DNA of 33,399 nt from Neoconidiobolus thromboides FSU 785 (Eukaryota; Fungi; Entomophthoromycota), in contig MU626468.1 of assembly GCA_025603075.1 (NCBI GenBank), forward strand, positions 1 through 33,399. The letters run 5' to 3'. Below are positions 22,146-24,789 of this stretch, piece by piece. The translations under genes and the position numbers were made by a program. Positions within the stretch are counted from its first letter, which is position 1. Every line of letters starts with the position of its first letter. The notes below the pieces were generated by a model, which worked only from the letters and a program-made list of their open reading frames with translations, was not told the origin of the DNA and ran no database searches.

Positions 22146-22240
22146 AGGGATCTATTTTTTTGTTTAAGAATTTTACTAACAATCTTTCTGCTCAAATAAG
22201 TGCTTAAAAAACGTAAAAGTAATGAAATCAAAACATCTCC
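22146..22240 (+). mobile_element. MITE family A, diverged
   Basis: AGGGATCTATTTTTTTGTTTAAGAATTTTACTAACAA...AAAACATCTCC, followed by ATAT. Confidence 0.85.
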
Positions 22241-23214
22241 ATATAATGAATTATAATTCTTAAATCTATCTTTGTTAAGGTCCAAATTAAATATAAACTT
22301 TATTAATGTTGAACACCCTAAAACTTAATGTATTATTAAGAACTTTTTATAAAACATCGAATAGATCAAAGCTTATGTCTAAGTTGAACTTCGTTCCAGT
22401 TTCATAGCTCTCCATTGTTTGTATTACTCAATAGGTTGGGTGGATCTAGTTGTAATATTAAATTAAAAATTCAAACATTTAATAAATTTGAAAATACCTT
22501 TAGCAAAGTCATTTATAAAAAACCTAATTTATTGTGCATTGATGACTCATACTGGTAATGAATAATATAAAAAATTCAAAACTATCTTAATATCGTAATA
22601 GTTGATTTCATCAATTATTTTAAACTTCCGATAATTGATTAATTTATTAGCTTCAATTTCTGCAAATAAGATTTACCAACAAGAAAGTTTTAAAGCGAAC
22701 TCAAGCAGGATTACTATGAAATTTGGTTATTCTATATTAAAGAATTTATGTACCATTCAGCTTTTTAAAATCTAAGCTTGGGGATTTGGGGGCTAAGTTA
22801 AAGGAATCAAATGATACCTTTATCTATCTAAATTAAGCTTCATATTCAATAAGTTTTACATCGGACTCTAAAAACCATTTTAATTGTGAAAACTATACAG
22901 TACTACATAAAAAAGAACAAACAGTTGAAAGTTATTATGTGGTAATAATGAAGGAAGAAAGAATAAGCCACCAAAGGGGGAACTCCTTAAGAATATGAGT
23001 AATAATATGGTTTTAAATTTAATTTAGATTTTCCACCATACAAATGTAAACTAAATAAAAATAGAAATGCTTAAGGATAAAAAGGAAGTAACATAACTGG
23101 TTAGTTTACGAGCCATGTTTTAAATACTATTTAAAACATGATTTGAACACTATATTAGAAAATAAAAATAACTTTGTTATTCCATTTTATTCTATTTTTA
23201 CATTTTGTATTTAG

Positions 23215-23871
23215 ATGATTAACAGCAGTAGTAGTAATAGCTACCACACTAACAGCTCACGTCTTAGTTTTGGTAGCAAAGAAAATGAAGACGAGAATAG
23301 GAAGATGATCGCATCTGCTATTGCAATGGCAGGGTTAGGAGAACTAGAACGCAAATCTCAGCTCATGGAAGTCTTCCGTCAATTAGGTGGCGAGGATGGG
23401 ATTAGAAATTTGGTAAAAAGAGTATATCAATACAATGTAACAGATTTACGGATCGCTCATTTTTTTGATATTGCTATGGTGGAACGGTTTGAAAGAATGT
23501 TCGTTAGCTTCTTAGTTGGCTTACTTGGTGGTAAACCTTATAACCGTGAGCAAATGATTACTTCTCATAAAAGATTTGGTGGCCTTAAAGATAAGCATTT
23601 TGACGCTTTCATCCATAACTTCACTATTGCTATGATGCATGAGCAAGTAAATCATTCCGCTATAAATATAATGGTTGGGCTTATGGAAACTACAAGAGAA
23701 GACGTAACTGGTAGAACTAAATTAGAAGAGCTTCCTTCCCCTCATGTAGTCATACAGGGAGGGGATGCAACTAAATGTCCCTTCTGTTGTACTAAATTAG
23801 ATAAAAGTAGCAAGTGGAAAAAAAGTAGAAGCTTTTCTAAAAAAGCAAGCGGGGAATGCAGTCTAATGTAA
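23215..23871 (+). CDS. Group I truncated (2/2) hemoglobin with C-terminal polybasic-CaaX tail, 218 aa (5' end may be incomplete)
   Basis: The core VFRQLGGEDGIRNLVKRVY...DLRIAHFF...FLVGLLGG.KPY...MITSH...LKDKHFD aligns by eye to trHbN: Gly-Gly motifs, TyrB10 (Y71), PheCD1 (F84), proximal HisF8 (H118). It ends ...KKASGECSLM*. The ATG directly follows a pyrimidine tract and TTTAG, so an upstream exon is possible. Confidence 0.9.
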   Translation: MINSSSSNSYHTNSSRLSFGSKENEDENRKMIASAIAMAGLGELERKSQLMEVFRQLGGEDGIRNLVKRVYQYNVTDLRIAHFFDIAMVERFERMFVSFLVGLLGGKPYNREQMITSHKRFGGLKDKHFDAFIHNFTIAMMHEQVNHSAINIMVGLMETTREDVTGRTKLEELPSPHVVIQGGDATKCPFCCTKLDKSSKWKKSRSFSKKASGECSLM

Positions 23872-24694
23872 TATATATCGCCTTCTTATTTATCATATTT
23901 AAAGCACAGTATCTTTATTAAAGCTTTTTCATTTACGTTTATCTTTCATAGCTACCTTTTTCTTATATACATAATGTTTATACTTGTACATTATTTTATT
24001 ATACTTTTAAATAGCCTTTTAATATTTTATTTAAGCGACTTATTTTAATACCAGTACAATTTAAGGTACGATAATTTTTAGTTTATGATTTAATTGACCC
24101 ATTGTTATGAAATAAATTTAATATATAAATTACTGTTGTAAATCGCTTTTACCATAAAAATTAATATTATATACCATCCCATTTATTCTTGAATTGATTT
24201 AGTCGTGCGATCCAACTAAACTTGTTATAATAGTAGAGCTATTTTAATATGAAAATGTTGTTTTTTGAATTTTTGTTATAAAATTATAAAGTTGTAATAT
24301 TTATTTATAAACTTTTGTTTTTTATCTATAATAATCTATAAATAAAATAACGCAACTTATTATTTAAAATACGGCAAAAAGGATTTTAAAGATTTTAATA
24401 ACATTATCTATTTTTTAATTTACCTTCAATTTTTATTCTAATAAAAACTAGATGCGCAGTTCATCCAATACTCTTAAAATATTTCTAAAAGAACAAATAA
24501 GCGCAACTTAAAGATTATTTTGGTCAAATAAAATTTAACCGTAAAGATAATCCCCAAAATTTATAATTTTGGTTTTACCTACTGCTAAAAGAACCGAAAG
24601 CCTAGAATTTATTTTTAAATTTTATTTCAAAGTAGCAACTTTTAGGGTCAAATCCAAGTTTTTATAACAGTATAAATTTTAATATTTAAAATAC

Positions 24695-24789
24695 AAGGGT
24701 GTTTTCTTTATTTTATCACTTTTTCTATTTTTAAGCGCTATTTGCATAGAAAGCTATTAGTAAAATTCTTAAACAAAAAATGGACCTTT
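24695..24789 (-). mobile_element. MITE family A, diverged
   Basis: Core TTTTTAAGCGCTATTTG...TTAGTAAAATTCTTAAACAAAAAA. Confidence 0.75.

Follow-up and report, generated by a model that had tools for sequence, protein, structure and literature searches.

A group 1 truncated haemoglobin of Neoconidiobolus thromboides with a putative C-terminal prenylation signal

The window analysed here is a stretch of 33,399 nucleotides (nt) of Neoconidiobolus thromboides FSU 785 (contig MU626468.1, assembly GCA_025603075.1). N. thromboides is an aphid-pathogenic entomophthoralean fungus. On its plus strand the window encodes a group 1 truncated haemoglobin (trHbN) of 218 amino acids (aa), here called the window protein: an N-terminal extension, a globin domain, and a tail that ends in the CaaX box Cys-Ser-Leu-Met, a putative farnesylation site. 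A sequence-only reading of the window had described a group I globin domain running without an intron into a tail with eight Lys or Arg at aa 194-210 and a terminal CSLM, and had likened this end to the membrane anchor of K-Ras. The open reading frame (ORF), a Pfam match and colinear RNA contigs bear out the first part, and the composition and end of the tail are read directly in the sequence.

Gene and transcript

The gene and its features are listed in Table 1. An in-frame TAG abuts the start ATG, and the genes of the paralogue and orthologues described below are, like this one, uninterrupted single frames. An exact look-up of the full 218-aa protein found no record. The sole recorded protein for the locus, a 114-aa fragment, has no start, stop, N-terminus or tail, which may explain why the CaaX end went unnoticed.

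Table 1. Features of the globin gene and its surroundings, in window coordinates
Feature	Position	Strand	Evidence
Complete coding sequence, 218 codons + TAA, intronless	23215..23871	+	ORF scan; RNA contigs
In-frame TAG before the start ATG	23212..23214		
TAA stop	23869..23871		
5′ leader (untranslated) of 258 nt or more; main transcripts have no intron before the ATG	22957..23214	+	RNA contigs X6, X2
3′ untranslated region, 70 nt, to poly(A) addition site	23872..23941	+	RNA contig X7
Recorded 114-aa fragment (aa 56-169)	23380..23721		MU626468.1, GCA_025603075.1
N-terminal extension aa 1-51: Ser/Asn-rich low-confidence start, then predicted long pre-A helix aa 23-56	23215..23367	+	AlphaFold2 model, pLDDT 51-88
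Group I truncated (2-on-2) haemoglobin domain aa 52-168	23368..23718	+	Pfam, PDB matches, AlphaFold2 model, Foldseek
B9 and B10	23422..23427		
TyrB10 (Y71)	23425..23427		
PheE7 (F92) to PheE11 (F96)	23488..23502		
HisF8 (H118)	23566..23568		
PheG8 (F132)	23608..23610		
C-terminal tail aa 169-218, predicted disordered flexible linker	23719..23868	+	AlphaFold2 model
Cys-Pro-Phe C188-P189-F190 within KCPFCC (aa 187-192), resembles haem-regulatory motif	23776..23784	+	Clade conservation
C192	23788..23790		
Basic Ser-rich patch aa 194-210, proposed electrostatic second signal	23794..23844	+	Sequence
CaaX box C215-S-L-M + TAA, proposed farnesylation site	23857..23871	+	ORF; yeast positive set; clade conservation
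Short repeat element, inverted copies	22147..22240 and 24698..24780		
Two 52-nt introns skipped by contig X2	22446..22497 and 22625..22676	minus (GT..AG)	RNA contig X2

The RNA data are assembled contigs whose strand is not recorded and whose depth is no measure of expression. Contig X2 (1890 nt), from the same organism, matches 22677-24261 without a mismatch, gap or joint. Contigs X6 and X7, from a close relative with which about half of 31-mers are shared, are colinear with the window over 22957-23486, 23551-23908 and 23779-23941, and X7 continues with 22 non-templated A residues after 23941. Because the contigs are colinear through both the tail and the TAA, with poly(A) downstream, both are present in a mature plus-strand mRNA; no transcript that splices out the tail was found among them. 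The contigs of the close relative show ten coding differences from the window, nine of them synonymous; the sole replacement is C192Y. Six of the variants lie in the tail (five synonymous, one non-synonymous), a pattern compatible with purifying selection on the tail.

Two other readings of the transcript were rejected. An extra exon or intron upstream of the ATG was not adopted: the RNA is colinear over the leader, and the one sign in its favour was a joint of low depth to a repeated element. In Tetrahymena, TAA encodes Gln. The ciliate code, which would abolish the stop, was raised by Tetrahymena being the best solved relative (below); it is ruled out by the origin of the contig in a fungal assembly, by polyadenylation of the mRNA 70 nt past the TAA and by orthologues that terminate at the same place. 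The leader holds six upstream ATGs that open frames of 1-10 codons, which may be chance in AT-rich DNA or may reflect translational control.

Globin domain and haem site

Pfam family PF01152 (Bac_globin) matches aa 53-164 (E = 1.9e-9; 38.2 bits, cut-off 21). The top relative in the PDB is the group 1 truncated haemoglobin of Tetrahymena pyriformis, 3aq5 (E = 2.8e-12, aa 52-167); Mycobacterium tuberculosis HbN, cyanobacterial GlbN and Chlamydomonas THB1 are further ones. An AlphaFold2 model built from a 61-sequence alignment has block means of the predicted local distance difference test (pLDDT) of 88-98 across aa 41-170, with 89-98 inside the globin domain. Foldseek aligns the domain with 3aq5 at a TM-score of 0.85 (root mean square deviation 2.2, 113 columns), and its top matches are all group 1 truncated haemoglobins. 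The proximal HisF8 (H118) is invariant in all 61 aligned sequences, and TyrB10 (Y71), PheCD1 (F84), and G59 and G105 of the Gly-Gly hinges at 58-59 and 105-106 are each at least 90% conserved there. Judged by Pfam, PDB relatives, model, Foldseek matches and the pair HisF8/TyrB10, the window protein is a trHbN, a putative binder of haem and gaseous ligands.

The extension of aa 1-51 varies among relatives and is not conserved. The protein starts M-I-N-S, without the N-terminal Met-Gly and nearby Cys that would mark myristoylation. A hydropathy scan of the whole protein, as distinct from a dedicated signal-peptide predictor, found no signal-peptide-like or transmembrane (TM) stretch; the peak 15-residue hydropathy is 1.34 and lies within the globin E helix.

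C-terminal tail and CaaX box

The model has no secondary structure past aa 164, and its pLDDT is 46-61 from aa 171. Since the tail is predicted to be disordered and the scan turned up neither a signal peptide nor a TM segment, the C-terminus should be reachable by a cytosolic farnesyltransferase (FTase). The protein ends ...KKASGECSLM. From in vivo yeast prenylation screens with Ras61 and Ydj1, Berger et al. (PMC9231725) compiled a list of 489 positives among the 8000 Cxxx sequences and another of 508 negatives. CSLM is on the positive list, in agreement with the sequence-only reading, which took a CaaX box with Met at X for an FTase substrate. Three boxes of the relatives described below, CSIN, CVIQ and CTIQ, are also on it, CSIN and CVIQ being additionally on the ‘cleaved’ list, and a fourth, CAIQ, is predicted to be prenylated and cleaved (p 0.99999; PMC9231725).

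The negative list supplied a control: it includes CLKN, the end of the distant tandem truncated haemoglobin P0137. That protein, ending KKKKILNKCLKN, was for this reason left out of the count of lipid-signal ends. Two more candidates, P0028 (ending CC) and P0049 (ending CATC), were not counted because their ends are of the Rab type. Rab-type C-terminal ends require the Rab fold.

Upstream of the box, aa 194-210 read KLDKSSKWKKSRSFSKK: seven Lys and one Arg, with six Ser, one Trp and one Phe. Only 4 of 2378 windows of 17 aa (0.17%) in the long open frames of the contig hold at least eight Lys or Arg, so that the patch is unusual even for an AT-rich genome. The 21 residues preceding the box contain eight Lys or Arg and two Asp or Glu; the basic run is interrupted and ends five residues before the Cys. 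An ESM Atlas search with the tail was uninformative (best score 0.63).

Relatives and conservation of the box

Relatives were sought exhaustively, with phmmer over all 1.84 billion representatives and with a profile search of 5.8 billion proteins. Only seven close relatives were returned. With the window protein they form a clade of eight, all from the Entomophthorales; it represents three species of that one order, and Zoophthora, Entomophaga, Pandora and Conidiobolus sensu stricto lie outside the sample. A Cys stands exactly four residues before the stop in every member. The boxes are CSLM, CSIN, CAIQ, CVIQ (Entomophthora muscae), CVIQ (Massospora, from DNA) and, twice, CTIQ; position a2 is always I or L, and X is always M, Q or N. 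One of the relatives (P0002, NCBI name globin-like protein, N. thromboides FSU 785) ends ...KNKTKSKKSCSIN and comes from the same assembly as the window gene, of which it is therefore a paralogue and not an orthologue. The E. muscae proteins end ...QCQCAIQ (P0001, stop confirmed in DNA), ...LCPCVIQ (P0015) and ...GCACTIQ (P0019 and P0151). The annotation of the Massospora cicadina protein P0153 ends ...LCPC, to which the DNA adds V-I-Q-stop (locus L004, 1501-1971). Apart from these ends the tails, of about 27-48 residues, are nearly unalignable, and only C188 and C215 are invariant.

The residues before the box divide the clade. The paralogue has six Lys or Arg in the 21 residues before its CaaX, and neither N. 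thromboides protein has a Cys nearby. The five proteins of E. muscae and Massospora have 1-4 Lys or Arg in the corresponding 21 residues and, without exception, a Cys at -6, giving C-x-C-a-a-X. H-Ras ends C184-K-C186-V-L-S, and K-Ras4B ends with a polybasic stretch and CVIM. The sequence-only reading asked whether orthologues keep both a terminal CaaX and a basic patch: the CaaX recurs in all eight members, and the patch is confined to the two N. thromboides paralogues and is not a clade-wide trait. Neither a spliced-out tail nor an orthologue lacking the box, two outcomes that the reading had named as refuting, came to light in these data. The reading's comparison with K-Ras may hold in so far as Lys and Arg are dense in N. 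thromboides; the patch is more diffuse than that of K-Ras4B, and the other members carry a Cys at -6, of the H-Ras type, so that the label would fit N. thromboides only. Taken together, the ends of the clade appear to mirror the Ras dichotomy of polybasic or palmitoyl second signals.

In principle these ends could be due to chance: a disordered tail that is rich in Lys and evolves fast may come to have a terminal Cxxx and a basic patch without function. The high AT content of the genome (about 27% GC), the poor conservation of the tails and the small number of species sampled speak for this. We give this reading almost no credence: the Cys stays at -4 in 8 of 8 proteins despite divergent tail lengths and sequences, all five boxes are prenylation-competent, the tail variants are mostly synonymous and equally basic windows are as rare locally as stated above; it is already disfavoured.

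A maximum-likelihood tree restricted to the globin domain gives the clade of eight support of 100/99 and a stem of 1.12 changes per site. The clade is nested in a 99/91 group with Basidiobolus and the kickxellomycete Mycoemilia (Zoopagomycota), near a chytrid sequence. None of the outgroup proteins, from Basidiobolus and Mycoemilia, ends in a CaaX, and the simplest reading is a single gain of the box at the base of the sampled Entomophthorales. Three changes fall on one branch: the gain of the lipid signal, the move of Cys-Pro to the C-terminal tail, and the remodelling of the distal pocket. The tree supports, for the Entomophthorales, the earlier suggestion of a lineage-wide undescribed subfamily, and the limited literature searched yielded no report of a prenylated globin.

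C-terminal TM tails occur in a 366-aa homologue of Basidiobolus ranarum and in several metagenomic trHbN. Tail-anchor-like ends, with a hydrophobic helix followed by basic residues, are seen in P0041, P0044, P0067, P0070 and P0109. The matches with the highest total score (P0003, P0005, P0006, P0007 and P0008) are proteins of 900-1900 aa with 7-12 tandem trHbN domains.

Cys-Pro motif in the tail

A Cys-Pro follows shortly past the globin domain in all eight members, as CPF in four and as CPH or CPN in the rest. Among the retrieved trHbN relatives the tripeptide CPF was seen 14 times against 0.77 expected (~18-fold), never inside the globin domain. Its carriers, with the motif in N- or C-terminal extensions, include P0025, P0027, P0031, P0152, P0033, P0035, P0052, P0094 and P0100, and one Basidiobolus protein has three copies. 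Besides the globin domain, the window protein has a single Pfam signal, a weak one, to the haem-regulated ALAS presequence; it lies at aa 140-199 and spans the motif. Haem-regulatory motifs consist of a Cys-Pro in a flexible region, as a rule with a hydrophobic residue after it, and K-C188-P-F in the disordered tail has this form. It is possible that CPF accompanies the trHbN family as such a motif. The neighbouring C191 and C192 might provide further acylation sites; C192 is Tyr in all RNA contigs of the close relative (G>A at 23789), so the CC pair is not conserved even within the species complex.

The cysteines of the tail, both of the Cys-Pro motif and at the terminus, might thus serve haem, metal or redox chemistry and not lipid attachment, whether as a regulatory site for a second haem or as a switch between thiol and disulfide. 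The conservation of Cys-Pro speaks for this, as do the enrichment of CPF in extensions that include those of Basidiobolus proteins without a CaaX, the ALAS-presequence match, and haem oxygenase-2, whose Cys-Pro haem-regulatory motifs form a redox switch (PMC2742820). We regard it as improbable, since it leaves unexplained the Cys at exactly -4, the FTase-friendly residues at a2 and X, and boxes that fall within the yeast-positive 6%. A haem-regulatory motif and a CaaX anchor are, moreover, not mutually exclusive.

Distal pocket and proposed chemistry

The window protein has Phe at E7 (F92), E11 (F96) and G8 (F132). E7 is Phe throughout the CaaX clade, against Leu or Gln (Ile in three) in 54 other sequences; E11 is Phe (Leu in the paralogue) against mostly Gln; G8 is Phe against mostly Val; and B9 is Val, Met or Leu against mostly Phe. 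All eight members have HisF8 and six have TyrB10, one E. muscae pair having Phe at B10. O2-avid, NO-dioxygenating trHbN typically have a polar network on the distal side, with Gln at E7, E11 or both; no member of the clade has it, though it is not a defining feature of trHbN. The long branch on which the CaaX end arose also carries the remodelling of the pocket. GlnE7 and GlnE11 stabilise bound O2 in trHbN that dioxygenate nitric oxide (NO). The Phe-rich pocket suggests ligand handling unlike that of classical trHbN, and the NO-detoxifying role put forward by the sequence-only reading is weakened, with Phe/Phe in place of GlnE7/GlnE11. Given the missing Gln residues and the loss of TyrB10 in one pair, NO dioxygenase is a weaker guess than the lipid anchor; as the main activity we would put NO dioxygenation at somewhat under an even chance.

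The anchor may also be real and the haem domain no O2- or NO-detoxifying enzyme, acting instead as a membrane-tethered sensor, for instance an NO-selective one, or as a lipid-directed haem protein that would, for instance, bind or reduce lipid hydroperoxides. An apolar distal pocket makes for lower O2 affinity. The clade-specific pocket (PheE7, Phe or Leu at E11, PheG8, a residue other than Phe at B9) and the long stem of 1.12 favour such a role, and bacterial haemoglobins are reported to bind membrane lipids in works cited in PMC4081604. On the opposite side stand TyrB10 in six of the eight, HisF8 in all, and a protein with no partner signalling domain, and we hold a sensor or lipid-directed role to be possible, though rather unlikely.

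Surroundings of the gene

Between 17500 and 27000, in ~10 kb, no ORF other than the globin gene reaches 100 aa; the DNA is repeat-rich, with 21-32% GC. Inverted copies of a short repeat element flank the gene, with 42-nt arms that are 74% complementary and 2457 nt apart. RNA contigs with the element are very numerous, their depths summing to about 29,800, and it gives rise to spurious joints, for example from 22178 to 24720.

Over the region 22271-22676 contig X2 skips two 52-nt introns that read CT..AC on the plus strand and GT..AG on the minus strand. A minus-strand gene overlapping the globin gene was considered and rejected: the spliced minus strand has no ORF of at least 30 aa there, and only a 44-aa ORF lies antisense to the globin gene. 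This suggests that the spliced minus-strand RNA is a separate non-coding transcript, fused by the assembler, that lies upstream of and possibly antisense to the globin gene.

Interpretation

The reading that we think likely is that of a cytosolic trHbN that is farnesylated at C215, tethered to a membrane through its disordered tail, and engaged in handling small gases. That the window protein is really prenylated seems to us quite likely, a little more so than the reading as a whole. Residence at the plasma membrane, which is favoured by the second signals of Ras type, we put at an even chance. The data show the gene and its transcript, the fold, the haem-binding residues and a conserved CaaX box that suits the yeast FTase. 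We infer farnesylation, removal of aaX, methylation and attachment to the cytosolic leaflet, and with less assurance a haem-based O2/NO or redox chemistry.

The steps would be as follows. FTase would attach a farnesyl group to Cys215 after translation. The last three residues would then probably be cleaved and the new C-terminus methylated, as in Ras. Held by the farnesyl group, with help from the basic patch close by, the haem domain would stay on a leash of ~45 residues at the cytosolic face, most likely of the plasma membrane. In Entomophthora and Massospora the anchor would be completed, in the style of H-Ras, by a likely palmitoylated Cys two residues upstream of the CaaX Cys. The membrane-held haem domain would most likely handle gases that concentrate in lipid (O2, NO), by NO dioxygenation or by redox or ligand sensing.

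Several observations weigh against this account. The basic patch is broken, lies 5-21 residues from the Cys and has a Glu at -1 of it, in a genome that is Lys-rich as well as AT-rich. The FTase specificity data are those of the Saccharomyces cerevisiae enzyme and not of the N. thromboides enzyme. The RNA contigs are strandless, and X2 also holds minus-strand introns upstream. With eight sequences from three species of one order, the conservation of the CaaX counts few independent lineages. The distal pocket has neither GlnE7 nor GlnE11, and one E. muscae pair is even without TyrB10.

Farnesylation might also lead elsewhere. Farnesyl alone targets endomembranes, and lamins combine a nuclear localisation signal (NLS) with a CaaX box, lamin A ending in CSIM. 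The window protein could accordingly reside at the inner nuclear membrane, with a lamin-like box and the patch as NLS, or at the endoplasmic reticulum or Golgi with farnesyl alone. It has both the CSLM box and a basic stretch, and the patch is set apart from the Cys and is not conserved beyond N. thromboides. However, every member of the clade carries a putative second signal of Ras type, polybasic or CxC-aaX, which in Ras directs to the plasma membrane, and no bipartite or classical NLS pattern is kept across the clade. We judge these locations unlikely.

A bolder version of the tethered-globin reading strikes us as a long shot of much the same order. The clade would here be a new globin class with a Phe pocket tuned to gas or lipid and a reversible farnesyl-electrostatic or farnesyl-palmitoyl membrane switch, serving NO, O2 or redox signalling and not detoxification. 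Phosphorylation of Ser in the basic patch, or the haem or redox state of the Cys-Pro motif, would free or re-target the globin, and the membrane-proximal signalling would perhaps be directed against insect immune NO.

Returning to the simpler reading of a farnesylated, membrane-tethered globin, the clade would probably be the first family of haemoglobins in which prenylation provides the membrane tether. As far as sampling goes, only insect-pathogenic Entomophthorales have this family, which makes a role against host NO or hypoxia testable. The three changes that arose together on one branch offer a natural experiment on the co-evolution of location and ligand chemistry in truncated haemoglobins. 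Since the gene models are too short (a 114-aa fragment here, and three residues missing in Massospora), proteome-wide prenylation surveys would miss these globins.

Comparison with known systems

The window protein shares with the T. pyriformis protein 3aq5, M. tuberculosis HbN and Chlamydomonas THB1 the Pfam family, the 2-on-2 fold, HisF8, TyrB10, PheCD1 and the Gly-Gly hinges. Those proteins are soluble and single-domain, without a CaaX and with Gln at E7 and/or E11, whereas the clade has Phe at E7 and Phe (or Leu) at E11 together with PheG8. A 2012 census of fungal globins found T globins only in Batrachochytrium dendrobatidis (single-domain) and Allomyces macrogynus (chimeric) (PMC3287990). 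The window protein is, like these, a group 1 T globin of an early-diverging fungus; the families of Entomophthorales and Basidiobolus, and the CaaX tail, go beyond that census.

A literature and full-text search for a prenylated, farnesylated or CaaX globin found, within a limited library, only reporter constructs and plasmids, and a PRENbase-type prenylation survey does not mention globins. Globin reviews describe N-myristoylation and palmitoylation, in globin X and in nematode and crab globins, as well as a C-terminal TM helix predicted for the Acanthamoeba trHbN, and never mention prenylation (PMC7475203, PMC4081604). A globin family bearing a CaaX thus appears to be undescribed in the literature searched. 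The membrane-bound N-acylated globins are proposed to act in protection from reactive oxygen species and NO or in signalling (PMC7475203; PMC4081604). As proposed here, the window protein would resemble globin X and the Caenorhabditis elegans and crab globins in a covalent lipid tether at the cytosolic membrane face. It differs from the globin X type in fold (2-on-2, not 3-on-3), in its start (MINS, not a Gly2 for myristoylation and a Cys3 for palmitoylation) and in having an isoprenyl signal at the C-terminus.

AccaN of Acanthamoeba castellanii is a trHbN with a predicted C-terminal TM attachment (PMC4081604). Proteins of this type use a hydrophobic TM helix, whereas the window protein has a CaaX box and no hydrophobic segment. 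With TM tails in B. ranarum and metagenomic homologues and a predicted one in AccaN, C-terminal membrane tethering appears to be recurrent in trHbN. Haem oxygenase-2 also has a C-terminal membrane tail anchor. Its arrangement of haem core, flexible Cys-Pro region (haem-regulatory motifs, PMC2742820) and C-terminal anchor is an analogy of layout only, the fold and chemistry being unrelated and the anchor a TM helix.

The tail also resembles the hypervariable regions of Ras, which likewise combine a disordered tail and a farnesylation box with a basic patch, as in N. thromboides, or with an upstream Cys, as in E. muscae and Massospora. Unlike the contiguous Lys run of K-Ras4B, the patch of the window protein is broken by Ser, Trp and Phe, with ASGE before the Cys, and there is no GTPase domain. 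If the proposal is true, C-terminal prenylation would be a third independent route of globin anchoring, beside N-terminal acylation and the predicted TM tail, and would strengthen the view that a membrane-held haem-gas module has been selected repeatedly.

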